A stretch of 64,000 bases of DNA from Marsupella aquatica. Its lineage: Eukaryota; Plantae; Marchantiophyta. The notes under the pieces are model-generated. The model saw only the letters and a program-made list of their open reading frames with translations. It was not told the DNA's origin and made no database searches. The DNA is taken from contig OZ316897.1 of the NCBI GenBank assembly GCA_973895155.1, positions 4,248,211 to 4,312,210 on the forward strand. Reading direction: 5' to 3'. Every line of letters begins with the position of its first letter. The first letter of the stretch is position 1. Shown piece after piece: positions 3,101 through 41,990 of the stretch. Position numbers and translations under genes: made by a program.

Positions 3101-3314
3101 GGATTCAAGCGTGGGCAGTGATCTGAAAGCGAATAGTGGCAAGGGTCAGAAATCCAGTAGTGCCTCACACAAGTTGCACAAGAAGGCTGCTAGAAAGAAG
3201 GATCGGTCCTGGAGAGCTGGTGGGAAGCAATCTGTCATACCCCAAGTAAGTGGTGTTCAAATCCCCGTTAGTCACGGTGCTGCTGACCGATATCAAGTGC
3301 AAGTATTTGAGTGA
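150..3314 (+). CDS. LSG1: Large subunit GTPase 1 (circularly permuted YlqF/YawG-family GTPase), 7 exons (~150-385, 502-597, 754-841, 1126-1219, 1424-1480, 1721-1800, 1967-3314)
   Basis: Spliced exons give the LSG1 motifs WRRGLA, TPFEKNLDIWRQLWRVLERSDL, VVDARNPLFYRSPDLE, LLNKADLL (G4), GYPNVGKSST (G1), TPGKTKHFQT and DCPG (G3). GT-AG boundaries are visible; exon edges are approximate. Confidence 0.95.
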
Positions 3315-9002: not shown

Positions 9003-10172
9003 CTATTTTTTCTTTTTCCCACTCTTTCCAGATTTCCCTGCGGTTGCACTGGCCCCTGCAGCTGCAGACGCATCTCCATTTTTTTTGTTCACGCGGCCTT
9101 GATGTTTGGGAATCAGTTCAGCTACCTTGAGCATAAGAGCCGTCCCTGCAGAATTTCACCCATCAGGTGACTATCGGTTGGGTCATCTATCGATTGATAA
9201 GCACCTTCACGTTGACGATGCTTTTATAAGTCGAATTCAGCTACCGTGCAGTAAATAAATAAGGAAGACATACTTGTAGGAACGGCTGAATTCATAGGAA
9301 GGCCATCCTCTCTCTTCAATTGAACTCGTACTCGTCCTCTTTGCATAAAATCCCTAGAGTAGGCTTTCGTAAGCTGCATCCAGCAATACAAAGCGACATT
9401 GGTATGAGCTTGAGCTTACTCGGCTCCAGCTTAAGTACGATTTCAAATAAAAGTGAATTTAATCCATGATTGAGCTCGGGAAGTAAATCGTCCTCTAAAC
9501 TTATCAATATCCTCGGTAGCTCGCTTGAGAGAAAGATCAGTCGGGCTGGGACTTGCATACCACTAATAAATGAGGCGTCATAACACAAAAACATGAAGGG
9601 GGGCCAAAAATTGAGACACTGTTCAGTACCTCCCCAAAGCGACGGTCAGGCATGGCTAGGAATTATGTCGATGAAGTTCAAGCAGGAATCGATCAAAACG
9701 TAACCCTAACACAAAAACACTAATGCAGGCATGAAAGCACAGAGGATTTAACTCGTAATGCAGCAGTGAGAAAAAAGGAGAAATGGCACACTAGAATCAG
9801 ACAGAGAGGCTTTAGGTGATTCAGGGAGGTCATGCCCACATTTCGAATCTCAACACCATAGCTACTTTAATAAGGTTCAAGTCATAATCGAACAAGAGCT
9901 GACCGTGGAAAACAAACCTAACACACCAATCAAAGCATATGGAACTCAATACGAAAACAGCAATGAGAGAAGGGAACGTGCAACACCTCAACGAGACAGG
10001 GCAGCTTCAAATAATTGCAACAGTCGTGAATTTCTGCCACGTTTGGATTCTGAACACCTTGGCTACTGCTGATTCGCCTTCCCTCCGCAATCGTTTTCTT
10101 AGAATTGATATAAATGGGGTAGAAGATCACCCATCGCGTCACATCCGCGGGTTCTGAAGAAATGCAGGCCAT
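9003..10172 (-). CDS. SRP19: Signal recognition particle 19 kDa protein, 3 exons (10172-9987, 9373-9274, 9145-9003)
   Basis: WVIFYPIYINSKKTIAEGRRI / KAYSRDFMQRGRVRVQLKREDG / LMLKVAELIPKH...GKKKK*, with canonical splice sites. Confidence 0.95.
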
Positions 10173-10809
10173 GGTGTCGATCGACAAAACCCCTCCGTAG
10201 CTAACAGGCAGCAACTTTAACCCCTTTCGCGTCGGCACATCAGTGCACGCGAACAAATTTTGGACCTAGGAACTTATTCTCGCAAGTCACAAATCAGCGC
10301 CAACAAAGTGCCACTCACACGCAGAACAGAACCGATCTAGTTCGGACAATTTGTGTTGTCTGTAGATCGATGCAAAGGGAAACACACACACTGATTACTC
10401 CTCGATGAATCAGGCGGTAGATGGGACTGGAGCTTCAATCAATCTCTCGACCTTTTGCATCGATGACTTTGGATCACACCGTAGACTTACCACACCTTGG
10501 GGAAGCACACCTACAACTCCCACACCAACCAGCTGGGACGTTGAATTCACACTTAACACAATAATGTTTGCAGAATTCGGACTCGCTTTGCTGTTCTGTA
10601 GTGAGGTGCCGAACACTATTTATGATGAGTTTGATTTGATTTGAAGCTACGAATTTAATTCTCTTTCGTCTCTTTCGACTGTATATCCTACGATTCTCGA
10701 ATTCCAATCGGACCTACTTCCATGGAAACTGCCAATGTACTCCCACGCCAGACAAGAAAGGGTCAATGACAAAGATGGTTGACTGGAGCATCATTCCCGA
10801 TTCCTTGAA

Positions 10810-11290
10810 ATTTGTTTTGGCTTTATATATATGCTGTGGAACCCCACGGAAAAGGGGAAACAAGCAGCCCGGCCAAGGCACCAGAAACACAAAACAAACC
10901 GCAGCCCAGGGCAAAACCCCCCGGCCCACCACAGACATCACACCTCACCCAAATGGTAGGCCCCAAAAGCAAGGGGCCAAGAGTCACACCTCACCCAAAT
11001 GGTAGGCCCCCAAAAGCAAGGGGCCAAGAGCCAGCTACCAACCTGGCAGCACAAGCCCACATCAAACATCTATAACATAACCACTATGGTGAGATCTCAG
11101 CCAACTCCTACGCTGGGATGCAATCTAGTCTTGTGCAGAGAACAAACGCAACTGTTTCTTATCAAAGGGAAGTCCCCAACCCACGCCAAACAGATTGTCT
11201 ACCACCTCAGAAAGCACAAGCCCGCAATCAAAGGTCCTCACCGGAGCATCATTCCCTATTACTCTGGTGGGGACCAGATATTCTCTGCTA
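10810..11290 (-). mobile_element. 5'-truncated LINE 3' end; contains a ~46-bp tandem duplication (10939-11030)
   Basis: The minus strand ends GCTTGTTTCCCCTTTTCCGTGGGGTTC plus an A-rich tail, matching the 3' end of the LINE at 18989-19040. Confidence 0.55.
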
Positions 11291-11666
11291 GTTTATAGAA
11301 ATAAGCAAACTCAATTTTGTCTTTCACATGAGTGAGAAAGAAAGCCAAGATGGACCAAGGTTGGTTGTGAAACCCAGATGGATTTGCAAAGCTTGGATGG
11401 ACTAGTTCAGACCCTCTAAATAAACTTGGGTGGCATTTTTTATGGCTTTAACTGAAATTTGACTTGTAAACTGGCTCTTTCCAATTTGCAATTGGTTTTA
11501 TTTAGTTCACCTAGTGGTAAGTTGCTCTTCATGTCCATTCTCTAGGTGACCTTGACAAAACTGTAAAGTAGTTCACAATGGTGGTAGTTTGTAGCTCATG
11601 CCGGAACTACTCAAAAAGTCTTTCACAAAAGCAAAGCGTTCGTTGGTAGTTAGTTTATAACATTTT

Positions 11667-12126
11667 TGTAGGATCAAAACGGACAGTATAACGTCTCATT
11701 ATCACTCATATAGCACTCAAGTATACCGACACAAAGGTACGTGGTTCACCAAGTCAAGGCTACATCCACGGCCACACCAAGAGCTTCAAAAGTACATATC
11801 ACCATAGTGTGGGGAGAAATCAGATCAGGAAAAACACTCCAAACATACATGTGCTCTATAGTTTCGTGGTTTGCCTCAAGGTCGACTACGTCCACGGGAA
11901 GACAAAGCTTTATTAACGGTTGTCTCTACTCAAGCATCACCATAGCTTTCATCTCTTCAAGCCCTCATCTCTTGCTATATCCCTATGTTCTCTCTTGAGA
12001 ACTCTCTTGTGTGCTCTCACACCACAATAAGGATCAATCTCTTCAACTAGGGTTAGAGCAAACCCTAGTTAACATACTGACCATAGTTCAACCCAAGACT
12101 GAGTTAACCTCTACACATAGCTCCAT

Positions 12127-22457: not shown

Positions 22458-25400
22458 TCCTCCCCCAATAAACCTGAGCAGCCTCCGGTCTGCTCCAATC
22501 CATCAGATTTCCTCTAAGTCTCAGTCTGAACTTGAGCCATGTGCCTGGACCACTTCCTCCTCAAGAAACTCAAAACCAAAGCCTTCAGACTCAGCCTTAG
22601 GCACTCCACTTTCCAAAAACTCAAAATCCAACTCATCCGAATCAGAACCAGTCAAGACCCTTTCGAAACTCAAGTCCATCGGATGCGCCTAGACCAATGC
22701 CTCGTCTTCAAATTCACTCAAGTCGAAACTTGAGTCCATTCCCTTCTTGATCCTCCTCTTGAAGATCTTCACCCTCTTCCCTGCGTAAGGTACTTGGTGA
22801 ACCGTTCCATCCAACTCCCGAATAGTATAGGTTGCATTTGCATGAACATCAACCACCACATACGGACCTTGCCACCTCCGAGAAAACTTGTTTCGGCTCA
22901 AGTGTTGCTCGTCCAACTTACTCTTGTAATCAGAACCCAATCCCCTTCCTTAACCAAGACAGGCCTCAACCGATGAATCCTGTCAAACCTGCCCTTGTTC
23001 CTTAACCTCGCCATCTTCAGTTGCTTCCAAGCCACCTCAATATTTGCAGGTAACAAGTTGAAGTGTTCGATCCTTCAAACCAGCAACCCCTCTCTCGAAA
23101 CTTCATCTTTCCAACCAATCAGTCGCCAGCTACAAACATCTTCCTCCAATGCCATCATCGGCAAGTGCCCAGTAAGTAGCTCAGCCAAAACGTATCCGGT
23201 CACTGAGCTACAAGTCATCCAATTTGCTAACAGAGCAAGTGGAAGAAGACTCAACAACTTGCCCAAGTCCCCATCACAAGCCCTAGCCAAAGCGCTCACA
23301 ATCTGAATATGCCCCCTTTCGGATTTCCCATTGCCTTCCGGATTGTAACGCGAAGTCGGCTTCAGTTTGATATGGTATTGGTAAAAAAACTCTTGCGCTT
23401 CTTTGGAGCTGAGCTCCCCCCTATCAGCCCTGATCCTTGTAAAGCATCCATGCCTTGCAATGATGTCCTCAAGTATAAGCCGGCAAATGGCAGCAGTAGT
23501 GTTCGAAGCCAATGCTCTCCCTTCCACATAAGAAGACAAGTCTTCTCTTGCCAAAACCAAGTACCTCGCCCCATTGCTCTCTCTCGGCATGTACATCACA
23601 TCAACAGCCCATTAAAAGTGTAGAGCCACGGGGTAAGTCAGAACCAATCCATCCCTATGTTGGATCCTCGAGTAAAACTGGCAAATCTCGCAAGTCTCGA
23701 CATAGTCTCGAACGGCCAAGTATAAACCTGGCCACCAGTACAGCTTCCGAACCCTCTCATAAGTCAAATGCACCCCTTTGTGCCCAGCCATGTCAGCATC
23801 ATGGCACTCTTTGAGAATTCAATCTTTCTCATCCTTAGTATCCACAACCCTCTGTAACAATTGACTTGGGTCCTTATGCCTTCGCCACAAGTAGCCCTCC
23901 CTCAATAGGAAATTGTAAGATCTCTTCTGGATCTTGACAAACTCTTGGTACCTCCACTCTAGTTGCTTCTCCAAAGTGCTAATGTAACGCCCGATATCCA
24001 GCAACTCTCCCGAGTAGAGTTCTTCCTTGAACTCTAGACTTCCAACGCTTTCGGTTCCGGTCACCTCGCCAACTCTCGTCGCTACCTGGTTTCCAAATTT
24101 TGCCCTTGACAGCATGTCGGCAACCGGATTATCCTTTCCCGCAATGTGACTTAGCTCAGGGTTGAACATCCGAATGAAAGCGATCCACCTGAGCATTGCT
24201 ATGTTAGGCATGTCACAATTCGCGATCATTCCCAGCAGCGATTGGCAATCAGTCTTAACCACCACCGGCGCCCAATCATATAGTTCCTCCCCTGATGGAG
24301 TGCCACTTTGGCACCCAAAGCTCCCTCTTAACTTGGGCATATCTCCTTTGCCTTTCCGTAAAAAAATTTGCCTCAAATCTGATAGCATACCTTTCCCCAT
24401 TCTCGTCATCTTGCCCAACAGCCCACCTGGCTGCGAATGGACTCGCATCAACAGTCATGATCAGTGGTCACCCACTCTCATAGTCCGCAGCTTGGAGAAC
24501 TGACGGGCTCATGAGAGTGCTCTTAAGCTTGGCCATTGCTTCACTATGCTCGGGTAATCATCTCCACTTAACCTTCTTTCTCAATAGCTCATAAAGCGGG
24601 TCCGCCAGGTGCGAGAAGTGAGGGATCCAGATCTTGTAAAAGACACAAGCACCCAAAAACCTCCAAACTTTTGGCACCGATTCACAATCCTTCATCTCGC
24701 TAATAGCTCTCACCTTGTCCATGTTCGGCTTCCTTCCATAAGATTTGCACATTTGCCCAACGACTTTCACCTCTTTCATCCCAAATTCAGACTTCGCCCC
24801 CAAAAGAGTGACTCCCACATCAATCAGCTTCTTGAGAACCGCCTTAACATCAGTAATGTGATCCCACACAAACTGTCGGATCTCATCACTCCTCAAAGTC
24901 TCATCCTTCCCTTCAGCCAAGCAACCCTTAATCGGGACATCATCAATGAACGGCCTCGCCTTTTTCGGAATGAACGGCTCCAAGATTTTACTCATTGTAT
25001 TTTGCATGTGCGCTACCAAGTTTGTCGCCCCTTGAGAAAGAGTGCACATCCTCAAGAGGCCCATCGGGGTCCTCATAGTCGTAATGTCTCGGCTCTCTTG
25101 TGCCAACTAGAACTGGTCGTAACCCAAAAACAAATCACCCATGGAATAGATCACCCTCCCAACGAACTCCTCCGCAAACTCATCCACGAGTCCCACATTC
25201 CTAATGGTCACCTTATTCGGAGGTTGCATATCCTGAATGAACCTCAAATTTCCATTTTCTTCCTCACTATAAACCATCTGTTTGGGTAGGGAGTATCAGA
25301 CCTCTCAAAAATCCTAGCACTCAGTTTCTCCTTAAGTAGTTCCACAAGCTTTGGAGCCAAAGCCCACGGAACGGAAATCGGTTTCAGATCCCACAAAATA

Positions 25401-26289
25401 TGAGGGACAGTAAAGATGACCATCGGTGTCACCTTACTCGGATCCGCACAACCAATTGCCTCAATCAAAAACAAGAATGCCTTACCATGCTCCATTATCA
25501 TTTTCCGAAATGCTACTTGCTCCACCTCCGTAAGTAACCCATCCGAACCAATCTTAAGCTTTGCCAAACTCTCTGGAGTAAATTTATGCCCTATCCGATC
25601 AGTTGGCCTCAGCCTCGGTTCCAATCTCGCTCGATCCATAACCTCTATCGCATCATCCGGCAAAGGTATCACCGTCGACCTCACCTTCTTGTCGACCGTC
25701 TTGTATTTGGTACTCGAGTATAAAAGCACAATCATAGACGAGTACTGCCTTTCCAATTCTTCCTCCAGCTTGTCCCTTCCCAAGTTAGACTCCGCACATT
25801 TGAGTGGCTCATCCTCTCCATTATCCATCGTATTTTCCCTTTCACAAGGAGCTAAGGAACGAGCACTCCACCGGTCCACTCTTTTCAGCAAAGTGCCATG
25901 TTGTTTTCCAGGACCTGGACCAGAGTCGGCACTCTCAATCCTCAACCCCTTTCTATTCCTCTCGTTCCCAGGTAAAATAGCCGGAAATTGAACCACTTCT
26001 TTCCCATCTTTGCTTCAAACCTTCACCATGAAGGTAGTATCGTCCAGAACCTTCGCCTCCATCCTCCATTCAATAATGAACGACATGCCCAATATCACCG
26101 GAAATGACAAGTGCTCGTGAACAAAAATGTTACAAGCCTGCTGACATTCTCGAACTTCACCGTCACATTTGGACATCTGCCCCAAAGATAGTCCTTCATC
26201 AAACTCACCGAGTTCACACTCCAAAGCAACTCATTGTCCACCGGCCAATTCCCCTTTTGAAACACCTTTGGATCCATCAAGTTGACTTT
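21708..26289 (-). mobile_element. 5'-truncated, degenerate Ty3/gypsy LTR retrotransposon (protease-RT-RNase H-integrase-LTR)
   Basis: Protease tail (NLMDP..FPVILGMSF), RT (RPFIDDVPIKG), RNase H (TVDASP, KTDCQSL, DNPVADMLSR), integrase (LAREDLSSYVEG, RADRGE, NGKSERGH) and WQGPY. The gag and 5' LTR are missing. Confidence 0.9.
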
Positions 26290-28137
26290 GTAGCCAAGCT
26301 GTGTTGTGACAACTTTGGATACTTTAGACCACGAGTCTGAAAATGTACTAGCTCCTCATTAGGCAACCCATGCATGTCGGCAATTTTATGGACTAAGACC
26401 TCCTTCTTGAGGGTTGAGTATCCTCTCACTCCCTGTGCTTTCAACCAATCTTGCAACCTCTTAGTAGTAATTGCTTGGAGCTAGGAACGAGACATGGCAA
26501 CATCGATGTCAATAGTAACAGTGTATATGACACTCAACATCTTATCCACAAACTTTTTGACCAGGTTCTTTGCCTTATGTCACAAGTCTTTTTGGTTCCT
26601 AATCCCCATATCCTTCACAATATTATTGATAGTGGCTTTATCATCATGAATGACCTCGATGATAGATATCCCTACCTCTCTCAAGCTATCTAATGCCTTT
26701 TTGGTACCCCTGTCCTCCATATACCAGGCATTTCCCTCCTCCCTCCTCAGAATTGTGACCATGTCAATTACTCTGTTATTCTCAATGTTGAAAATAGATG
26801 TGGTACCATGAAAACCGCTCCTAGATGAATCCCATCGGGTATCTAAATAAACTACTAATCCAGGATCTGTCATAAACCAAAGAAAGTAGACAATGTAAGG
26901 AACATCAACCTGGTCAAGCCAAAAGTCATTGAGCCTCAAGTACCATAACAAAACTCATCACTAACCTGTCTCAGTCGTCCACCTCCGATCAATTAATGTT
27001 GTCTTTCAACTCCTCCCACATGCGTCTTTTACTTTGAACCCACTCTTTTTTGACAACTGCTATCCATCCACCTCGTGGTCGCCCATGGCCACTTTGAAAG
27101 TCATGCCAATGAGCCGCTGTAGGGACATGTAATCCTAGATGTGAGGCAACAATAGCCAAGAAGGTGTAAGTAAGACCAGAGCAAAGGGTGGAATGGTACA
27201 ACCTAGGTGTAATCATAGGAGAACTCCTCCCAGGCCATGTATATGCCACCGAGGGAGTAGCCGATCAACAAATATACCCAACAACTCACGATCAAAGAAC
27301 AATACTCTAGCTGGCATACGGGATGTTGCTCTATGAGTAGACTGTGGGTCCAAAGGTCCTATAGACTGAGAGTCAAGAATATTAGATGGCCCAGTTCTGG
27401 CCAATGGAGATGGTGTTGGGTTTGCCTCTTGCAATGGTCCGGTAGGCTGGGAGTCTGGCACATTGAATGCCTCCTGACAGAAGAACCCCACAAATGCATG
27501 TTAGACATTGTGTAATTTGTAGTCCAAGTCAATTTGGCATTAAGACGCAAGAGTCATACCCCCGTTTCCTCATCCACAATGTCATTTGCTCCCAAAGCTG
27601 TAAGAGCATCTGTGTCGTGACATATAGTATCATAGCCATAGTGTATCAAAAACATACAAGGCACCGACAATGCACATATGCAAGCTGCTAGCAACCAACA
27701 TGCATAGAAAAAATCCCATCACATTTACAAGTGCCAAGAAAAAGCAAATGAAGTGGTATGTACATAGTGGAGGTGTAAACCTCTGTATATAAAAGGCGTA
27801 AAAGAAAAAATTGTACTAAAATCAAATCAAAACCCGACGGGATGCCAAGATCGGCCAAGAGCATCTAACGAATCACTGTGTGAATCCCGTGTACAGAACT
27901 GACGAGCACTGTTTGAGCTCTGTCAATAGCGATTCAAGAAGAACTGAAAAAACAAAGAAAGACATGCCCTAAGCAAGCAAAGTCCTGGCGTCACACTAAC
28001 AAGCGCATTTTCTTCAAGAACATCTAGAATTTGCTATAAGAACATGTTGTTAACTCAACTAGTACACTAGCCTCAACTACATACCTAGCGGGCATGCGAG
28101 GGACATGTCGATGTGCACAAGAGGCACTGTCCCTTAG

Positions 28138-28496
28138 GAGGTATTTACAAACGACAGCAAACAACAAACAGTAACAGCAAACAGAAACCGGTAACAGGAA
28201 ACAGAAACTGTTAACAAACAAATGAGTGGTAATTTTTTTAGAAATTTTTAGAAATTTTTTTTGGATTTTTTTTTTTGCTGAAATTGTTTTTTGCCAACGC
28301 CCGGCGCTGGTAATGCTAGCGCCCAAAGCTAGCCAAAAATTGTTTTTATTTAATTTTTTTTGGAAAATGTGACTTTTTTGAAAATATTTTTTGATTGTCA
28401 TTTTTCTTGGTAATAGTAACTTTTTGCTTGTAACAAGAAAATTTTTGCTGGTACCAGGAAACCTGTTTCCTATTTTCTGTCACGGGTGCCATACCC
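28138..28496. mobile_element. Small non-autonomous insertion (MULE-like MITE) inside repeat A2
   Basis: Absent from A1. Flanked by GTCCCTTAG / GTCCCTTGG, with imperfect inverted ends (GAGGTAT..GACAG..AAACAG vs GGGTAT..GACAG..AAACAG). Confidence 0.6.
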
Positions 28497-28514
28497 GTCC
28501 CTTGGCATGACAAC

Positions 28515-28690
28515 TGTCGTGACATATAGTATCGTAGCCATAGTGTATCAAAAACATACAAGGCACCAACAATGCACATATGCAAGCTGCTAGCAACCAA
28601 CATGCATAGAAAAAGTCCCATCACATTTACAAGTGCCAAGAAAAAGCAAATGAAGTGGTATGTACGTAGTTGAGGTGTAAACCTCTATAT
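28515..28690 (-). repeat. Split direct repeat B1 (partner B2 at 27613-27790)
   Basis: About 176 bp with roughly 6 differences by eye. On the minus strand it is preceded by the purine-rich GGGGGGATATAGAGG. Confidence 0.9.
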
Positions 28691-28728
28691 CCCCCCAGAC
28701 CACAACCAAAAGGAGGGCTGAAGAATAT

Positions 28729-28881
28729 TCAGGTAGCACGTGGAGCACAACAAGGGCAAAACCATAACCCTTTTGGCACCTGGGTAAGTTCAGGCCAAAG
28801 GCAAAAAAGATGGTACCCTCCATTGCAATTGTCACACAACAGCATCTGGTCAACATCATCAATTCGCAAGTACACTTTGCA
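28729..28881 (-). other. PHD finger at the C-terminus of the integrase
   Basis: CKVYLRIDDVDQMLLCDNCNGGYHLFCLWPELTQVPKGLWFCPCC* is C4HC3 with the second Cys changed to Tyr; it is one frameshift from the integrase frame. Confidence 0.9.
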
Positions 28882-31800
28882 TGGGAATTCACAGGTGGGA
28901 TCCAAGTAGAAGTGACAATGGTGGGATCCAGGTTAGGCAGATGACAAGGGGCGCAATTCTTGGCATTGTCAACAATTGTGCGCCCATCTGCCCCTTGTAA
29001 CTTTAGCACTCTAGATGGTCGAATAGCCTTAACCCTGAGAATAGTATGACTGGTAGAGGTGTCCAGGGTGTCATTAGCTTGCCGCTGCAAATACACAAAA
29101 TCTCCCACTTCAAACTTCCTGACCTTGGGCTGAAAAGTGCCCCACATGTGTGTGCATAACGCAGTGTGTCCCTGTGCTGTGCAATGGCCAAACTCTCCAT
29201 GGCCATGGGCATAACCCTCCTGAATAGGGCAGCTCTCTCAAAGATCACATCAGACCAAGTTACAACTAAATCCAAGTCCACCACCTGAAGCATGTGAGCA
29301 GCAATAGCAGAAGGTGGAACTTGGTGACGACAAAACAACAAAAAGTAGGGAGAAAAGTTAGACAGTGATGCATGTCTAGACATCCTATACCCCATGGCAA
29401 TGTACGGTAAGGCCAGGTCCCAATCCTCCTTGTTTTTGGTGAGGCAAATCTTTCGGAGACCCTTCTTGCATGTCTGAACCATGCGCTCTGCCAAGCCATG
29501 TGCTTGTGGGTGATCTTGTGATGTCTAATGATGATCAATGAGGGCCTGATCAAGTAGCTCCTGGAACTCTCCTCTGAACTCTGATCCTTGGTCAATGAGA
29601 CATTTTGCACAAGCTCCAAAGCGGCTGAGAACTTGTTGAAGAAATGGCTTGGCTGGTGCTATGGGAGGTCTTATCCGGCAATGCCACAAGTTCTATCCAC
29701 TTAGAGAAATGCTCTATCATGATCATGATGTAGAGATTACCCCAAGATGTGAGGGGTAATTCTCCAGCCAAATCACATGACCAACGATAAAACATGCCCT
29801 GAATAGGGAGTGGATGAAGTGTGGGTTGTCGAGATGTGAAAGAAGTCCTTACCCTATCACACTGCTCACACCGGGCAATAACATCTCAAACCTGGTCATG
29901 CATGCCTCTCCAATGATAATGGGGAACCAAGAGGCTGTAAGTCCTCTTAACGCCAAAATGACCAAGCTCATAATGTACCTTACAGATAAGGCCAACCCTC
30001 TCATGAATGGGTGGAACCACCACTTCCTTGTCTGGCAAGCAGCGCACGGGATGATCTCCCTTCCACAAGTAACGCTTGGACCTCTGTTGAATTTGGTCTC
30101 TTTGGGCTGCAGTGACATGTGTGGGGTATTCTCCATGCTACAGAAATCTTAGAGTATCGTTGTCCTCTCATGTCCACCACGGGTGGGTCAACAACGTAGC
30201 ATGGTAGCAAAGCAAGATAGGTAGATGCATGAAATGTAGGCAAGATGGAACCCTAGTCAAACTCCTGCCGTGCATCTAAGGAATCATTAGAGGTAATCAA
30301 AGGGCTGCGAGACATAGTGTCAGCATTCTAATGTATCACACCAGACCTATGAATTACCTCAAAGTCATACTCCTGGAGTAAGAGTGCCCAACGATCAAGC
30401 TTGCCAGTAAGCTTGTCGTTAGTCATCAACCACTTCAAGGGCTAGTGGTCTGTGTAGAGATTAAACCTGGTCCCGTAGAGGTAGGGCCTGTAATGTATGA
30501 CAGCCCACACAATAGCAAGGCATTCACCCTCATAAAAAGAATAATGACTGTCTGTCTGATTGTTGCTCCTGGATGCATAGACAATGATGTATTCCTTACC
30601 TTCCTCATCATGCTGGCCCAGAATGGCACCAATCCCACGGGCACTGCAATCTATGAGTAGCACAAAGACCTTGCTGAAATCAGGTCTTCTCAACACAAGG
30701 TATTCTAAGAGCTTCTCCTTCAAAGTGGCAAATGCTGCCTCAACATCTGTACTCTATGTCCAAGTCACATTCTTTTTCAACAAAGAGTACAATGGGTGTG
30801 CAATGGTACTAAAATCTTTGATGTAGTCCGGTAATAATTGCACAACTCAATAAAGCACCTAAGAGTGTGAACATCAGTAGGAGTGGGCATCTCCAAGATG
30901 GATATCACCTTGGCCCAGTGAGCCATGGTTCCATTTGGAAGAATGCGATGCCCAAGATATACTACTGATTTGACAGCAAATTCATACTTCTTGGGGTGTA
31001 TCTTTAGGTTCACTTTCTTAAGCCTCATGAATAGCTCCTCAAGGTCAAGTAGATGCTGGTCAAATCCTTGTTATGGACCAACACATCATCAATGTAGCAT
31101 TTCAGAAACTCAGCACCTTGAAGAACCTGGTCCATGACTCTTTGAAAGAATATGGGTGCATTCTTCAAGCCAAATGGCATCACTAATCACTCCCATAGTT
31201 GGTTACTACCATGGAAAGTTGTTTTCTTGTGATCCTTTGTAAGCAGCAAAATCTGGTTAAAAGCCTTGCCTTAGATCCACAAGAGTGAAGATGTCTGAGT
31301 CTCCAATGCTATCAAATAGCTCCTTTGGCCGTGGCATGGGGTATCTGTCCTGGGGTGTGACCAGGTTCAGTGGCCTGTAGTCCCCACACATGCGCTTCTC
31401 TGTCCATAATCCATTGGAATCCTTCTTTGTTGGCATCACTATAGCTGCTGCAAAAACTGATGATGGCTGAATAAGACCAGCTTCATAGAGCTCTTGGCAC
31501 CTCTCATCCACCAGCTGCCACTCATGCTTACTCAAACGGTGTCTCCGCCTAAAGATAGGTGTTTCATCAGCCAACACAATGGAGAACTGCATAGTCTTGC
31601 ACTTACCCAAGTCCTTCATAGAGAAAGCAACACGCTAGATCATGCTTGAGGAGCAAATTCAGCAGCTGGTCCTTCTATCTTTTACTCAAGTGGTTGTCCA
31701 TGATGAATGTGTAGTTGGCAACACTAGGAATCGGACCTGATGTACTTGTGCTTGAAGAACCACAAGTGCTAGCCTCTTCACTGTCCAAGCTACTAGCATG

Positions 31801-32069
31801 CTGCTGATAAGGTGATGAGGCCTCTCCAAGGCCAGTTGTATATGTTGCTGTGGTCTGATCCACACCATGAAACTCAGAAATAATGTCAGCCACATTACAA
31901 GGGACCTCCTCCCCCCCAACACGGGCTGAAGCGGTGAGTGTTGAATAGAGGTAAGTGCACCTAGTCTGGATGCCATGTAATAGCACCATGGAGTGGTAGG
32001 GCTGGAACTCCTGATACTGGATGAATCATGTACATCTGAAAAAGGATGCAAGTGACCAGAAGCCAAATG

Positions 32070-33000
32070 AGAGCATTAAGATCCATCACCCTGCCAAGTA
32101 AAGCATTCTTGGCCAGCCTGGTGATTTTGGTGTGGCCTCTAGTATCGGGTTGGAAGCCCATAGCCCGTACTCTCTCCTCAAGACTAGGTTCATCCCATGT
32201 ACCGGTAGAATGTTGATAAACCAAGCTAGGACCATCACCTTGAAAAGCATGTGCACCTGGAAAGGACACAAATGTAGGCCAAGCAGCACGGGGCTCTCTA
32301 ACGGTATTGGTTGGATACCAAGGGGCTGGTTCTTGCCGTGTAACTGGTTGGCAAGAACTATCAAGATCCAAAATTTGGTCCACTGTGAGGTTAGTGTCCA
32401 CTGGATGTGTGGTGAAGAGCTAACTCCAGCAAGGAAGGTGGTGCAAGGTTAGTCCAAAAGTTACAAAGACGATGTGCATAAGAACCATAATGCACTGCAT
32501 CAATGAGAAGGGGTGGTCCCAAGTAGTGTTGGACCACACTGAAATCCTCTTTGACCTGTGGACGCTGTTCAAACTAAGATGGAGTATTCTCAATGATATA
32601 ACCAATAGCAAGGTAAAGGGATTGAGCCCAGATAAGAACCTAAACCAATGCTGTGAAAAGGCCAGAACGAGAATCATGCAGTCCAGCACCGTGACCAGCA
32701 GCTGAAAACCCTTGGCATTCCCAACCAGCTATGATTAAATCAAGGGAGCCAAGAAGGGTTAAGTGTCGGTGCTGGACAAGCTGGATATCTGGGGGAAAGA
32801 AAGAAAATGTAGACTTCCATGCTTTGTGTGGAAACTGCTGGGAAAATTGTTCTGAAAATTCCAGCAGATGGGATTCAGCCACTTGCCTTGCACCTGGATC
32901 AATGTCCACGTAGATGTACTATTTTACCACCATGCCGGACTGTAGGAGAGCTTCCAGGCCTGTAGAAATGCCACCAAAAAGCTCAAGCAATGTAAGGTCA
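32070..33000 (-). pseudogene. Retroelement-encoded C5 cytosine DNA methyltransferase domain (DNMT3-like), disrupted
   Basis: Motif I LLELFGGISTG, II YVDID, III PDI, IV DLIIAGWECQGFS, V LHDSRSGLF, VI IIEN, VIII DAVHYGSYAHRLCNFWTNL, IX EERVRAMGF, X KNALLGRVMD. Stops at 32919, 32640 and ~32575, and a frameshift near 32400. Confidence 0.9.
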
Positions 33001-36000
33001 TCCGGAGTAGGAATCCATGTAACTGGTGCACTCAAGATTGGAGTTGTTGGCTGTCCATTGTGCTGCCCAAGGTCTTCAAACTTGCGCAATGCAACCACCA
33101 AAGGTCCATGGGCTGCTTGGAGCCGTTGTACCACCTCTGGTTGATGATCCACGTTGCTAGAAAGTGCTGCTATATATGCAACAACATGTGTAGCAGCCAC
33201 CTCATTGTCATCCTCCTCAATCCAATCCTGCAATGGATGGTTGACGTAGGTAGCTGTGTGCACTTCTTTCAACACATAATGGTGAGCCATGGGTGTATGG
33301 GCACCATGTAGATCAAGGGGAATATAGCCCAAGTGCGAGCTATCAGTATGCCAATCAACTCTGTAGTATGCATGCTCATGCCAATTGTCAATGGTGAAAC
33401 CTGGTGAGAACAAAGCCTCATGATCAATGGAGCACATTATACGTAGTGGCATTAATTTTGTAACCAAACATCTGACTGGGAAATGAAGTTCCTGATCTGT
33501 ACCTCCATTAAAAGTGAGGGTGAGTAAAGTAGAACTCTCACCCAACACGTCCTCCACAGTGCCACTAGCAGTCCGAATGTGCCACCTGGATTGCTGTAAA
33601 TGATCAGTCAATAGTCCCATCTTCTTGGCAAACTGAATGCCCAAGATCACTGGTTGAGTGTCTGTGTCTAGCATGACCACTTGAGGAGTGTGACCCTCCA
33701 ACTTGACCGCTGAATTCCTGTTGTCAACAATGACAATGGTGGTGGAAACTGAAGTCCTGTTACTAGGCACCACTTTTGGCAAATGATGAGGTATTTTGTG
33801 AAGGGAGTTAGTATCCACGGTCTTCCCACTCAACAGTATAGTCAAGAAAGATGGTCCCATAACCAGAATCAAGTGTGGCTCTAGTCACACAATCTGCAGC
33901 AATACTGTCATCTCTACCACTGGAAATTGGTACTTGGATAGCCAAACCAGTGGAAGCATGTAATGGAGAAGAAGGTCCAGTATGTATATGAGATTGGACC
34001 TCCAAAACCGGTGTCACAGGGGCTGATGATGAATATAGTGAGCCCTCTAGCGCTCTGATGATAGCTCTAGCATCCAGTTGTAAATCATGGCAACTGAAAA
34101 GTGGAGTTGTAAGAATCCTTTGTGCCATACTGGAGATGAAATGCTCAAACAACTGAGGAGAAACAACTCCCTGTGAAATGTCAGCAACACCCGGTGGTGG
34201 AATGGATGTAGTTGTAGCTCCCTCCCACCTCGCCAACAAGGTGCGCTCTTTAGCAAGCATGAGTGGCTGAAAAGATTGGGGTATAACAGCCCAAGCTCAT
34301 TTGGCTCTAGTCATAGGACCGGCAGCAAGACCATTAGCCTGTACAATGCGGCATGTGGGAGCAATATGGGAGGCAGCATTGGCCTGCTAGTAAGCAAAAT
34401 AGGATGGGCAGAATGAATCTGAAAATTCTGCTGTAAGACCAGGCTGTATAGCAGAGGACAACAAACACTCACCCATATGAGCATCAAATGGCAAGCCATA
34501 GAAAGAGCGGGGTAGAGGTGCTAAACTATCAGTGGTGCCTGGGCCAGGGATGAGTTGCACGTGACCAGCCGGTTGAGAAGGACCAGTAGAGGTAGTTGAC
34601 TTGCCTTTGATGTTGGCAAGTTGGGCACGTAAGGATTCAACCTCATGAGTTAGAGATTGAAGTTGAGTTGCCTGTGTGTTGTGAGCCTCCTTTTGAGCTG
34701 GTTGCTTCTGTTGCAGCTTGGGCGATTTGTTGGCACCACGTGCTTTGCCACTGGAAGGAGGAGCAACTGAGGCAATAGGAGCCCTCCTAGCTGGTGGGGG
34801 AGTGGAAGCAGGAGCAAGATGAGTGGCTTGCTGTTGTAGCTACTTTCTCTCTGGGAATTTGGCAAAATAAACTACCTCCAAGTGGCCCTCTTTCTCGCAA
34901 AAATCACAAGACAGATCCTCAGTAACAATGTCACATTCATTAGCCTTGTGATTAGGGTTACCACAGTAGTTGCAAGATGGCAGCATGTGCTGGCTTGGTC
35001 TTGGAATAATACTGTGGCACAAAAAAAAGATGGCTAGTGTAGGGGCAACAGCCTGGTACCTAGATTACGGTGGATGCGCAATACTGGCCTCATAATGTGC
35101 ATGGGCCAACTCAAGTTTCTCAGCAGTATCATAGACATTGAGCAATGTGTAGCTGTCTCCAAACTCTAAGAATACTTGTTGCAACACTTGCAAATAGAGA
35201 GCTGTGTGCCTTTCAATGCACGAAGATAGCGATGAGCAGCCTCCAAGTCTGTGATGCTCTGAGTGTCCTACTTCAACTTGAGAAGCCAACAATATATCAT
35301 CTTCAATGTTTCATCGCGTTGTCTCACAAAGGTGGCCAACTGCATGATTTTGTCAGCACTCTTGATTGGAAATTCCAATTCAAGAACTTGGAAAAACTCA
35401 GCCACTGGATCAACAAAGGCAGGGGAATCAATGGTGGGAGAAATGCCTGATGTAGCTTGTGCCAAGATAGTGAAAGTAATTGGTGCAGTGGTAGGAACTA
35501 GAGTAGGAGGGGAAGTGGTAGGAGCAGTAGCATGGGCTGCAATGGCATTCTGTAATGCCAGTTGTGAGGCAACCGCAATTGCACTAGCATAGACAAGGTT
35601 AGGCAATTGCGTGACAGCAACCAGCCATTGAGAATGCTGCTCATACACATCCAAAGCCTCATGGTGCACATACTCGACTAGCTGCTTAAATGCAAATGCA
35701 TTTGTGAAATTGCTGCCGTACTTCAAATCCAATTTGTAAATGACAGTAGAAAGTGGATTTGAACTCACGCAAAGAAATAGTGCTTGGCCGCCCGCTGAAA
35801 CGCTCAATGCGACCAGATGAGTGGCTGGCATCCATGCTGTATGTCGGTGAAGCAGGGACAACCACTGATGGAGAAGGAGTAAAGGGCAAAGAAGCAATAG
35901 CAGGCTTTGGGGTAGTGGTATGGGTGTTGCTACTATCTGTTGACGTCGTCAAAATTTTTGAGACTCCAATGAAATTGGCACCAACGGTCGTGGATCACTC

Positions 36001-37807
36001 CGCAAGTGGTACTTGGGTGTCGGTGGTGATGAGCTGCTACGACTCGGCTCCTCTGTTGACATGGTGCATGCTCACCTGGGGTGCCGATGGGAAAGAAACT
36101 GACAAGAAAAAGAAATGGCAGCCCCAAGGCTAGGAAATGAAATCCACAAAGGAAACAAACAATGCGAGGCAAAAATGTGTAGAATGTGTAAGCACCAAGA
36201 AACCGTCAAAGTCTATGCAGATGACATGTGGCGACAACAAAGAAATCCGGAAGAATGGGCCCTTGAAAACGTGAATAGGGGCCCCCCTTAAGTGTATACA
36301 CATCGGACCTAAATTGCCCCCGTTGTGTATACATATCGCGCGTCAGAATAAGCGACCGAGTGGGGACCGGCGCACACGGCCCTATGCAGAGTGTTGCCCC
36401 GTGTAGGTTGCGCAGTGAATGGCGACCATGGCCGGTAAAAGAAAAGTCGATCGGAAGTAGGTCACAGCCAGAAAGAAGTAGGTCACGGCCCGAAGGAAGT
36501 CACAATTGGGAAAAATGTTGGAATGGAGTCGTGGGGAGTGCACGCGGCCCTATGCACTTCCGTATGTGTATACACAGGGGAGCGGGTGGCAGGGAGAAAG
36601 ACAATGACAAAAAAGGGAGGACCAGGCACAAATGACAAGGCAAAAAGAAAACAAAAAAGGTGAGGCAAGCAAAAAGAAACTGGCCCCTTAATGGGGTCGA
36701 GCCCTGCATAGGGCTTTGCACCCCCCCTTGCAAGCTTCCAAAGAGGAGCTATGAGCCCCCTCCCCTCTTTTAATGATTCCTTTTGGGCCTCATGCCCTGG
36801 CAGGAGGACTCCCGTGAGATGGGAGTCAAATCTCTCCCCACTCTCCTGCTTTAAATGCCCTCCTTGAATGCCTGGCAAAAGGACTCTTGAGGGAAGGAGT
36901 CGTATGTACTCCCTCCTCTTAATGCATCATAGGGCCTTGTGCCCCCTCCTTGCACTCATGCCTTGGCTGGGGGTGAAAATCTACTCTTGAGAGAAGGGAG
37001 TCGCTCCCCCTTTCCTCTTAATGTTGTATAGGGCTTTGTGCTTTTTCCTGGCACTTGCTTCCCCCTCCCTTTTTTAATTTGCCATAGGGCCTCGTGCCCT
37101 CCATCTCGTCCCGCTAGCTTGTGCTCGGCCACAGGCAAAATCTGGCAACGGTAGGAAACTAGCAGCGGCAGGAAAAGAGGAAAGAAAAATGTCAAGGCTG
37201 GCAAGGCAAAAAGGAGAACAAGGGGCAAAAGAAAATGGGCACGCAGCCCTATGCAGTCAGAAGGTGATTGCGCGGTGGCCGAGGCGAGCGAGCGAGCCTA
37301 GGTAAGGCGCAGTGGCAGAGGTTGCGGCTGCAATCGGAAAGTAAAACTTTGGCCCCTTGTTGCCTATGTGTATACACATGCATTGCCGCAAGCCGTCGGA
37401 AAGGGCGCACGGCCTTATGCATTCAAGAGGCCAGCAAACACCAAAAAATGGCCCAAATAAGCACCGAAAAAGGTCATGGATGGGTTGCGACAGTCGGCAG
37501 TCGATACAGCAATCGACAGCTTATAGGTTGCGGCCAGTAAAGAAAAACTTGGGCTGCTGAAAACACAAAACCTCCCGGAAATGAGAAGCGCTCCCCTTGT
37601 CTCCTCCTGGGTGTACTGCGCCAGTCCGAGAGTTTAAGTGTATACACATAAATGATGTGTATCCAAAGAAAAATCTAACTCTAACCCCATCGCCTGATTT
37701 TTCTTCAAGAAATTCCACTAGCTTTGACAAAAATTGTCTAAACCGACATGAGTAGCTGAGAAGCACAACGTCTCCAATCTTCTTCCCTTCACCAGAGTTC
37801 TTCTTGA

Positions 37808-38201
37808 ATAAAAGGTGCAAGAGAAACAATCGTACTGAAATTGAATCAAAAACTGGTGGGATGCTCCCGGCCGATCTTGGCACTTGGCATCCCACCAGTT
37901 TTCGATTCAAGTGGGAGCAAAGTTCGCTTGCTTAGGGCATGTCTTTCTTTGTTGGTTTTTAGTTTTTCTTGAATGGCTGTTGACAGAGCTCAGACAGTGC
38001 TCATAAGTTCCGGACACGGGATTCAAGTGGGAGCAAAGTCCTGGCGTCACACTAACAAGCACGTTTGCTTCAAGAACGTTTGGAATTTGCTATAAGAACA
38101 TGTCGTTAACTCAAGTAGTACACTAGCCCTAACTACAATACCTAGCGGGCATGCGAGGGACATGCCGATGTGCACAAGAGACACTATCCCTCGGCATGAC
38201 A
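37808..38201 (-). repeat. Split direct repeat A1 (partner A2 at 27789-28512)
   Basis: 38030-38201 aligns with 27975-28135 plus 28497-28512, and 37808-37864 aligns with 27789-27845. The middle part is inverted between copies. Confidence 0.85.
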
Positions 38202-38479: not shown

Positions 38480-39035
38480 GGTTGTGAGTAGTCTGGGTAA
38501 ACTTTACAAGAAAAAATCCAAACCCTAACCAATAGTTTTGCATGCAAAAGAAATAAATATTACAAGAATTTTTGGCAAAACAAAAACCCGAAGCAATAGT
38601 TTTATATTTAGGAAGGTAGGTTTATATTTTGTTTTGTCATTATTGGATGTGAGTAATATGAGGTAAATTTACAGAAATGAACAGAAACCCTAAGCAATAG
38701 TTTTGCATCTAAAACAACATAAACCTAGTAGTTAGATCCTATGAACATTTAGGAAAGTAAATTCATAATTATTTTTGTCATTATTGGATGTGAGTAGTAT
38801 GAGATAAATTTACAGGAATGAACAGAAACTCTAAGCAATAATTTTGCATCTAAAACAACATAAACCTAGTAGTTAGACCCTAGGAATATTTAGGAAGGTA
38901 AGTCTATATTTTATTTTGTCAGTATTGGATGTGAGTAGTATGAGGCAAATTTACAGGAATGAACAAAAGCCCTAAGCAATAATTGTGCATGTAAAACAAA
39001 ATGAACCTAGTATAACTTACATCCTAAACATTTAG
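38480..39035. repeat. 141-bp tandem repeat, about 3 copies plus a degenerate one
   Basis: TTTTGTCA(T/G)TATTGGATGTGAGTA recurs at ~38632, 38773 and 38914. Confidence 0.85.
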
Positions 39036-41319: not shown

Positions 41320-41990
41320 GGATATTTTCCCCTCAACATCTTTTTCTCACCTCAAGATCTTTTCTCATCTAGCTTCACATCTTTTTCTCACATTGACACC
41401 TTTTCTCACCTAGACACCTTATCTTTTCTCATTTCCTCACTTTTTTTCTCACCTTGACATCTTTATTTCATCATAATATCTTTCCCTCATCCTCAATATA
41501 TTTTCTTTCATCAACATCTTTTTTAATCTCAACATCTTTCTCTCACTTCAACATCTTTTGAACATTCAATGCATAGGCATTGGGCTTGATGCTTGACATC
41601 TTGCCCTCTCCTCGACATCTTTCCCTCTCCTTAATATCTAGCCCTCACATTGACATCTTGCCCTCACCTCGACATCTTGCCCTCAACTCGACATCTTTGC
41701 CTCACCTCAACATGTTGCCCTTGCCTTGATATTTTTTTGTCTCCTCGAAATCTGTCGCTCTCCTTCACATCTTGCCCTCTCCTAGACATCTCGCCCTCTC
41801 TTCAACATGTTGCCCTCGCCTTGAAATCTTGCCCTCATCTTGACATCTTGCCCGTGCCTCAAAATCTTTCCGTCAGCTTGGCATCTTGCCCTCATCTGAG
41901 TGACATCTTTTCCTCTCTCCTAGACATCTTGTCCTCTTTTGGACATCTTGTCATCACCTTGAAACCTTGCTATCACCTCAAAATCTTTTG
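41320..41990. repeat. Degenerate ~20-bp minisatellite (consensus ~CTTGACATCTTGCCCTCTC)
   Basis: GACATCTT-type cores are spaced every ~20 bp across the interval. Confidence 0.85.

Follow-up and report, generated by a model that had tools for sequence, protein, structure and literature searches.

Results

A Gypsy-type retroelement with a methyltransferase domain

The window analysed here, a stretch of 64,000 nucleotides (64 kb) from Marsupella aquatica contig OZ316897.1, contains a Ty3/Gypsy-type retroelement of ~10.6 kb at 27613-38191 on its minus strand. Along that strand, the element encodes gag with a CCHC zinc knuckle, protease, a cytosine-5 (C5) methyltransferase, reverse transcriptase (RT), RNase H, integrase and a PHD finger, in this order (Table 1). 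The succession protease-RT-RNase H-integrase, with a DDE integrase and its H2C2 zinc domain, is that of Ty3/Gypsy pol. Two long terminal direct repeats (LTRs) were not found in the element, which instead carries split repeats in the layout A1...B1-A2-B2, common also to the Sphagnum siblings L005 and L012, where B1, A2 and B2 abut. The window protease is 55-64% identical to the protease regions of the relatives P0165, P0166 and P0167, two of which have Pfam protease matches, and the RT is 65% identical to that of L005 over 31628-30828 (tblastn), its RVT_1 match being weak and confined to one piece. The initial annotation of this DNA had referred to a PHD finger; Pfam recovers one after the integrase, and nearly all long relatives extending that far carry one downstream of the integrase. 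We identify the stretch as the methyltransferase domain of a streptophyte "Gypsy-DNMT3" element in a leafy liverwort, in a copy that is dead and has mutated heavily.

The domain was rightly located by the initial annotation at 32070-33000, although its true span, 31964-32995, is slightly wider. Inspection of the open reading frame (ORF) at 32919-33872 (minus strand, 317 aa) confirmed that the protease continues in frame into LLELFGGISTGLEAL, which forms motif I, and motifs I, II, IV, VI, VIII, IX and X follow linearly on the minus strand, in the canonical order that had been claimed, ahead of an RT that starts at ~31619 on the same strand. Motif I (LFGGISTG), motif VI (IIENTP) and motif VIII (AHRLCNFW) are all recognisable in the window copy, the second Arg of motif VIII being Cys there and Arg in L005. 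A profile search, suggested as a check at the outset, returned PF00145 on an 89-aa piece that holds motif IV (32640-32909; E 3.7e-6, 27.1 bits versus a cut-off of 22). Circular permutation, the hallmark of plant DRM enzymes, was not found in the window copy, where motif order runs from I to X.

To assign the domain to a methyltransferase type, phmmer and Foldseek were queried with the intact domain of a Sphagnum sibling, which is 63-67% identical to that of the window copy. Against all Protein Data Bank (PDB) sequences, the top 29 distinct phmmer matches were DNMT3A, DNMT3C and DNMT3B (E 2.8e-8 to 1e-4), followed by tobacco DRM as a weak match (E 0.0046) and then M.HhaI. Aligned to DNMT3A, the domain matches over motifs IV-VIII and again, in a weak segment of its own, over IX-X in the same order; it is therefore not permuted as in DRM. 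Plant DRM proteins are circularly permuted, with motifs VI-X ahead of I-V. The family domain thus shares a DNMT3-related catalytic domain with DRM1/2 but is linear, and the alignment pairs the N-terminal portion of the query with the C-terminal portion of the DRM chain, as expected for a permuted relative. An AlphaFold2 model built from 25 family sequences (mean pLDDT 92.3, pTM 0.90) was compared by Foldseek; among the matches listed, to rank 49, all are DNMT3A/B/C (E ~1e-18, ~22% identity, target-normalised TM ~0.8). The domain thus has a predicted DNMT3 fold, and its cofactor motif and catalytic residues are intact. The likeness to animal DNMT3A/3B/3C, the best matches in sequence and fold, comprises the motif order I-X, a motif VIII of the form D-A-x-x-x-S-x-A-H-R-x-R-x-x-W-x-N-L and a motif IX/X region of the form E-R-x-x-G-F ... 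L-L-G-R. Unlike the animal enzymes, the family domain is only ~21-22% identical to them, has Glu before the catalytic Cys, comes without PWWP or ADD domains and lies inside a retrotransposon polyprotein. Together with PF00145 and the ORF of L005 described below, these matches uphold the original call of a non-permuted, DNMT3-type C5 methyltransferase between protease and RT. The retroelement-borne members of the charophyte alga Klebsormidium nitens have likewise been grouped with Dnmt3 (de Mendoza et al. 2018, Nat Commun 9:1341, PMC5890265).

The domain is a constrained trait of the whole family

Relatives of the domain are numerous. When 1.84 billion representative proteins were searched by HMMER with a 146-aa piece from the C-terminal end of the domain, 374 matches were obtained at E <=0.001 and 114 at E <=1e-10. 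Named relatives come from Calypogeia fissa, Sphagnum magellanicum, S. compactum, several Closterium strains and K. nitens. The C. fissa relative comprises protease and methyltransferase (DNMT) and is 64-75% identical to the window pieces, the Closterium relatives carry gag-CCHC, protease, DNMT and RT, and the order protease-DNMT-RT (PR-DNMT-RT) is found in annotated Calypogeia, Sphagnum and Closterium proteins. The ORFs P0170-P0172 (1427-1437 aa) end ~100 residues past the DNMT. Scanning of JGI metagenome contigs with the 146-aa piece alone gave no matches, and a scan with a small alignment gave 449 stretches encoding relatives. Eighty of these were retrieved, bringing the loci analysed to 83. 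The RT follows the DNMT in every one of the 72 loci whose available sequence reaches the RT region. The best-preserved locus is 93% identical, over the aligned stretch, to an annotated S. magellanicum protein, and we therefore take the metagenome contigs mostly as Sphagnum DNA. In L005, positions 9380-11919 form an uninterrupted ORF of 846 aa with PF00145 (37.8 bits), RVT_1 and RT_RNaseH in one frame, and the protease region upstream of the DNMT is in the same frame, with one stop between. Judged from these reading frames, the domain appears to belong to the Gag-Pol frame in the siblings. Comparison of 31900-33900 with four public runs brought up thousands of contigs that are short, of very high depth and 90-99% alike, which indicates that the family is highly repeated in those organisms.

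One of the relatives, P0330 (455 aa, 44% identical), lies on a 2.4 kb contig assigned to a metagenome-assembled genome of Candidatus Obscuribacterales, under the label "DNA cytosine methyltransferase". It is probably a fragment of a eukaryotic transposon that was binned into a bacterial genome.

Selection on the domain was estimated from pairwise ratios of nonsynonymous to synonymous divergence (dN/dS; Nei-Gojobori), with codons taken from tblastn segments against the L005 ORF and stop codons excluded. Among Sphagnum copies, the median dN/dS is 0.40 for the DNMT, 0.47 for the linker and 0.39 for RT-RNase H. Comparison of the window copy with Sphagnum copies yields 0.11 for both the DNMT (dN ~0.29) and RT-RNase H (dN ~0.25), a ratio that is rough because liverwort-moss dS is saturated (~2.5). 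As the copies compared are mostly dead and part of their divergence is neutral, constraint in the active lineages should be stronger than these figures show. The DNMT has been under purifying selection as strong as that on the RT.

These data bear on the alternative that a host DNMT3 gene fragment was captured by, or inserted into, one single copy, or that the arrangement is an assembly chimera. No second copy of the element lies within the window, and a sole copy is what such an event would leave. The domain is, however, in frame with the protease even in the window copy, the PR-DNMT-RT order recurs in 72 of the 83 loci (those reaching the RT) and in the Calypogeia, Sphagnum and Closterium proteins, its dN/dS equals that of the RT, and thousands of matching contigs occur in independent runs. 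None of the outcomes that the initial annotation had named as speaking against its proposal, a lack of profile matches, siblings without the domain or a lack of purifying selection, was seen, since PF00145 matches, siblings keep the domain and its dN/dS is at the level of the RT. With 449 metagenome relatives, a shared layout and the signature of selection, we consider a one-off capture or chimera ruled out, its probability being negligible; the DNMT belongs to the family as a whole.

A second arrangement of the same modules exists in elements with the order RT-RNase H-DNMT-integrase-PHD (proteins P0084, P0130, P0144, P0311 and others), represented by a "pol" protein of Scenedesmus sp. PABB004, a protein of Cymbomonas tetramitiformis (a partial ORF with the DNMT directly upstream of the integrase) and many metagenome ORFs. 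They share with the window family a homologous DNMT (33-40% identity) with a motif IV of the form G-W-[E/P]-C-Q, as well as the type of RT, RNase H and integrase, and nearly all that reach past the integrase end in a PHD finger. They differ in that the DNMT precedes the integrase instead of lying between protease and RT, and they fall outside the PR-DNMT-RT clade. Long ORFs without interruption, reaching 4177 aa, are frequent among them, so that these may represent live elements. Trees were computed for the DNMT (maximum likelihood, quick search, unrooted) and for the RT, the window copy being read through with X at stops and uncovered positions. In the DNMT tree, all protease-DNMT-RT members, including the window copy, form one clade with 98-99% SH-aLRT support; the clade of 26 rows (98% SH-aLRT) includes P0357 of K. 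nitens and, related to it, P0134, in which a protease lies directly upstream of the DNMT. The RT tree separates the two layouts likewise (94% SH-aLRT). There is thus one retroelement superfamily in which the DNMT domain occupies two positions, the window element having the streptophyte layout.

The window copy is a fossil

The initial annotation had judged this copy dead, and three in-frame stops, a frameshift and a terminal stop within the domain bear this out (Table 1). At position 32576, inside the third stop, all aligned contigs of the four public runs have another letter. The frameshift is visible as a frame change at ~32400 between the tblastn segments 33011-32397 and 32392-31925, and the contigs show a one-letter length difference at 32400. 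The RT, RNase H and integrase carry many further breaks. The protease active site (33660-33668) reads D-T-D in the window copy (VVMLDTDTQ) versus D-T-G in L005, a further sign of decay.

The stop at the end of the domain was also considered as a programmed leaky stop of the TMV type (TAG-CAA-YCA) between DNMT and RT. This was ruled out, because the codon at 31961-31963 is CAA in 65 of 79 sibling copies and L005 reads through, identifying the TAG as private decay. TAG-CAA-YCA occurs five times in the window, each time away from the DNMT-RT junction, and neither the window copy nor any of the 83 loci has it in frame between DNMT and RT.

Observed/expected CpG is 0.23 in the DNMT domain, 0.36 in the element and 0.57 in the window, with TpG/CpA in excess (1.4). 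At positions where the window copy differs from the family contigs, it mostly has A or T against their G or C, and transitions predominate. Such transition-rich, CpG-poor decay is as expected for a transposon methylated by its host. Stops in dead Sphagnum copies (L005-L083, domain and linker) are repeatedly found at identical CAG (Gln) codons, each shared by 10-25 of ~80 copies, a pattern that would fit either C-to-T changes at methylated CHG sites or common ancestry of the dead copies. From the identities of the A pair (91%) and the B pair (96.6%) we conclude that the insertion is old. The window copy makes no enzyme.

An altered catalytic loop and the case for an active enzyme

The catalytic dipeptide of the window copy is Glu-Cys, without the canonical Pro, within a motif IV reading G-W-E-C-Q. 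Damage to this copy was considered as the cause and ruled out, the trait being family-wide. Across the superfamily of retroelement DNMTs, W-E-C is the commonest form, next to W-P-C, W-D-C and W-S-C. The catalytic Cys itself is retained in 78 of 79 mostly dead sibling copies. When 25 diverse members are aligned, the catalytic Cys and the Glu of motif VI never vary, the glycines of motif I are invariant or nearly so, and hardly any variation is seen at the Asn of motif VI, at the first Arg of motif VIII and at several residues of motif IX/X.

We consider it likely that the domain is a real, once-functional DNMT3-type enzyme of the element. Several points weigh against this reading, beside the saturation of the liverwort-moss comparison noted above. 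Pro before the catalytic Cys is replaced by Glu in the window copy and in 71 of 79 siblings, and since the Pro-Cys pair is altered in this way in most members, catalysis could be altered too. The K. nitens domain, the sole clade member that has been assayed, gave no detectable methylation in yeast (PMC5890265). Among the loci scanned for ORFs, mostly presumed Sphagnum metagenome contigs, no stop-free full-length copy was found. No RNA run was found among the public runs containing the stretch, and the four aligned runs consist of contigs, which are uninformative on expression. Packaging into particles and the substrate (cDNA, insertion site or host DNA) are, finally, purely matters of inference.

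The same observations could be explained by a domain that is conserved yet does not methylate, a DNMT3L-like adaptor or a DNA- or chromatin-binding module that recruits or blocks the host methylation machinery, or, jointly with the PHD finger, tethers the pre-integration complex. The Glu at the catalytic-loop Pro in most members would suit such a role, as would the closest structures, which are DNMT3 enzymes working as oligomers with the inactive partner DNMT3L, and the inactivity of the K. nitens domain in yeast (PMC5890265). The yeast result was, however, called inconclusive by its authors, human DNMT3B having failed in the same assay too (PMC5890265). Some members have the canonical W-P-C, and Glu is therefore not required by the family. 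Moreover, the 25 members show little or no variation at the catalytic Cys, at Glu-Asn of motif VI, at the glycines of motif I and at the first Arg of motif VIII, residues of a kind that DNMT3L has lost. We therefore regard an adaptor role as rather unlikely.

An enzyme that acts on RNA in the manner of DNMT2, with the genomic RNA of the element or its tRNA primer as substrate, is very improbable. Made beside an RT, the domain would meet RNA and RNA-DNA hybrids in the particle, and a different substrate would be compatible with the altered catalytic loop; its sequence and fold are nevertheless nearest to DNMT3, DNMT2 is absent from the phmmer list (E up to 1) and from the Foldseek matches listed, and the DNMT3-like motif IX/X region is conserved along with a long target-recognition region. 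A DNMT3-type DNA methyltransferase stays the favoured reading.

Coordinates and neighbourhood of the element

Table 1 Features of the retroelement, listed from its 5' to its 3' end (window coordinates)
Feature	Position	Strand	Remarks
Terminal repeat A1	38032-38191	-	Element 5' end; 160 nt, 91% identity to 27976-28134
Gag-like ORF, 209 aa	35268-35897	-	No Pfam match; gag by its place upstream of the zinc knuckle
Gag CCHC zinc knuckle	34840-35022	-	Pfam zf-CCHC E 1.3e-4, 22.4 bits (cut-off 20.8)
Aspartic protease	~33534-33707	-	Asp_protease_2 and gag-asp_proteas E 0.008, under Pfam cut-off
DNMT3-like C5 methyltransferase domain, degenerate	31964-32995	-	PF00145; motifs I-X linear
Motif I, LLELFGGISTGLEAL	starts 32990	-	Within ORF 32919-33872
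In-frame stop TAG	32919-32921	-	After motif I
Motif II, YIYVDIDP	32918-32895	-	
Motif IV, AGWECQGFS	32729-32703	-	
In-frame stop TAG	32640-32642	-	After motif IV/V
Motif VI, IIENTPS	32597-32577	-	
In-frame stop TAG	32574-32576	-	After motif VI
Motif VIII, AHRLCNFWTNL	32477-32445	-	
Frameshift	32393-32405 (~32400)	-	Between motif VIII and target-recognition region
Motif IX, EERVRAMGF	32179-32153	-	
Motif X, LLGRVMDLNAL	32101-32069	-	
Stop TAG	31961-31963	-	End of DNMT domain
DNMT-RT linker		-	~110 codons
Reverse transcriptase	30777-31619	-	Several frames with stops
RNase H	30442-30723	-	Pfam RT_RNaseH E 5e-25
Integrase H2C2 zinc domain	29886-30068	-	Pfam Integrase_H2C2 E 3e-8
Integrase catalytic core, start	29592-29795	-	Pfam rve E 2e-5
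PHD finger, integrase C-terminus	28735-28932	-	Pfam PHD E 2.8e-9, 37.3 bits (cut-off 24)
Repeat B1	28515-28690	-	176 nt, 96.6% identity to 27613-27788
Repeat A2	27976-28134	-	91% identity to A1
Repeat B2	27613-27788	-	Element 3' end; 96.6% identity to B1

Within the repeats, B1 and A2 of the window copy are separated by a gap of ~380 nt, unlike the abutting repeats of the Sphagnum siblings, and 27881-27981 is the reverse complement of 37923-38025 (88%), an inverted segment that adjoins both A copies. Just beyond the 5' end of the element lie two tandem arrays, at 38606-39028 (three 141-nt units) and 41554-41949 (~20 units of 19 nt). A second degenerate retroelement with rve and RVT_1 matches occupies 23075-25996 on the minus strand, where GC skew is strongly negative (22-26 kb). 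Rfam gave no match in the window.

An ORF on the plus strand (1941-3314, 457 aa) encodes an LSG1-type circularly permuted GTPase, which shares 85% identity with its Calypogeia fissa counterpart and 57-60% with the Marchantia and Riccia proteins. On these identities the window comes from a leafy liverwort related, not identical, to Calypogeia.

Discussion

The nearest described counterpart of the window element is KnitGypsy-Dnmt3 of Klebsormidium nitens, in which an intronless Dnmt3-type domain is embedded in a Gypsy pol ORF (PMC5890265), within DIRS-like A-coding-B-A-B repeats and with Ka/Ks <0.2 (PMC5890265). Both are Gypsy-type pol elements with a non-permuted Dnmt3-type domain in the polyprotein, the window element and its Sphagnum siblings likewise have DIRS-like A-coding-B-A-B repeats in place of LTRs, signs of purifying selection on the DNMT are seen both among Sphagnum copies and between liverwort and moss, and the window DNMT shares a well-supported clade with K. 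nitens P0357. The differences are the host, a leafy liverwort with near relatives of the element in Sphagnum and Calypogeia, a DNMT identity to the K. nitens protein of only ~33% (measured on a Sphagnum sibling), a motif IV reading W-E-C in the window copy versus F-P-C in the Klebsormidium-like P0107 and P0134, and a PHD finger in the window element, which goes unmentioned in the text on KnitGypsy-Dnmt3 (PMC5890265). Unlike that family, moreover, the window copy is dead. By layout, repeats and phylogeny, the window element is of the same kind as KnitGypsy-Dnmt3, and what is new is the land-plant host group. A land-plant lineage, as envisaged by the initial annotation, accordingly holds for the host, as attested by the LSG1 gene that is 85% identical to that of C. 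fissa, but not as a land-plant invention.

Retrotransposons with a C5 methyltransferase in pol have also been described in dinoflagellates, as SymbioDIRS-Dnmt3 and SymbioLINE-Dnmt (PMC5890265), and for SymbioDIRS-Dnmt3 de novo CG methylation was demonstrated in yeast (PMC5890265). In contrast to the window element, SymbioDIRS is a tyrosine-recombinase DIRS element and SymbioLINE has a LINE backbone, neither being a Gypsy element with a DDE integrase, and the dinoflagellate cases are regarded by the authors as independent acquisitions (PMC5890265). The 2018 survey reported no DNMT expansion among the land plants that it covered (PMC5890265), and a 2026 preprint mentions just "streptophytes (Gypsy-DNMT3)", citing the 2018 work. 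Full-text literature searches returned no report of the Gypsy-DNMT3 family in land plants, their incomplete coverage making this no proof of absence.

In live copies, the domain would be made within the Gag-Pol polyprotein and could methylate cytosine at C5, with S-adenosylmethionine as donor, either in the DNA of the element itself (new cDNA or a fresh insertion) or in its surroundings. Beside the integrase, the PHD finger may serve as a reader of histone tails for targeting. Possible benefits to the element include a host-like methylation state, damped expression of its own that limits harm, and the marking or choosing of a safe chromatin site.

Tentatively, we propose that bryophytes (leafy liverworts and Sphagnum) and zygnematophytes harbour a large, ancient lineage of split-repeat Gypsy elements with a W-E-C writer of 5-methylcytosine and a PHD reader, its DNMT constrained as strongly as the RT; that this lineage is sister to, or nested in, the chlorophyte RNase H-DNMT-integrase lineage; and that the domain moved within pol once, near the base of streptophytes. 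Taken jointly, these propositions are plausible, although they fall somewhat short of being probable.

Retrotransposons with a DNA methyltransferase of their own invert the usual view of methylation as a host weapon against transposons. The case for Gypsy-DNMT3 elements previously rested on one charophyte alga, and the same lineage is now seen at high copy number in liverworts and mosses. Constraint on the DNMT equal to that on the RT, together with a PHD finger beside the integrase, points to a strategy that is old, has been successful and extended into land plants. DNMT3-like matches in bryophyte gene sets and in surveys of methylation genes may be transposon copies, not host genes. Bryophytes with genomes, methylomes and transformation offer tractable systems for testing the role of the enzyme, and, if it is active, land-plant genomes would hold an undescribed, transposon-borne source of de novo methylation.

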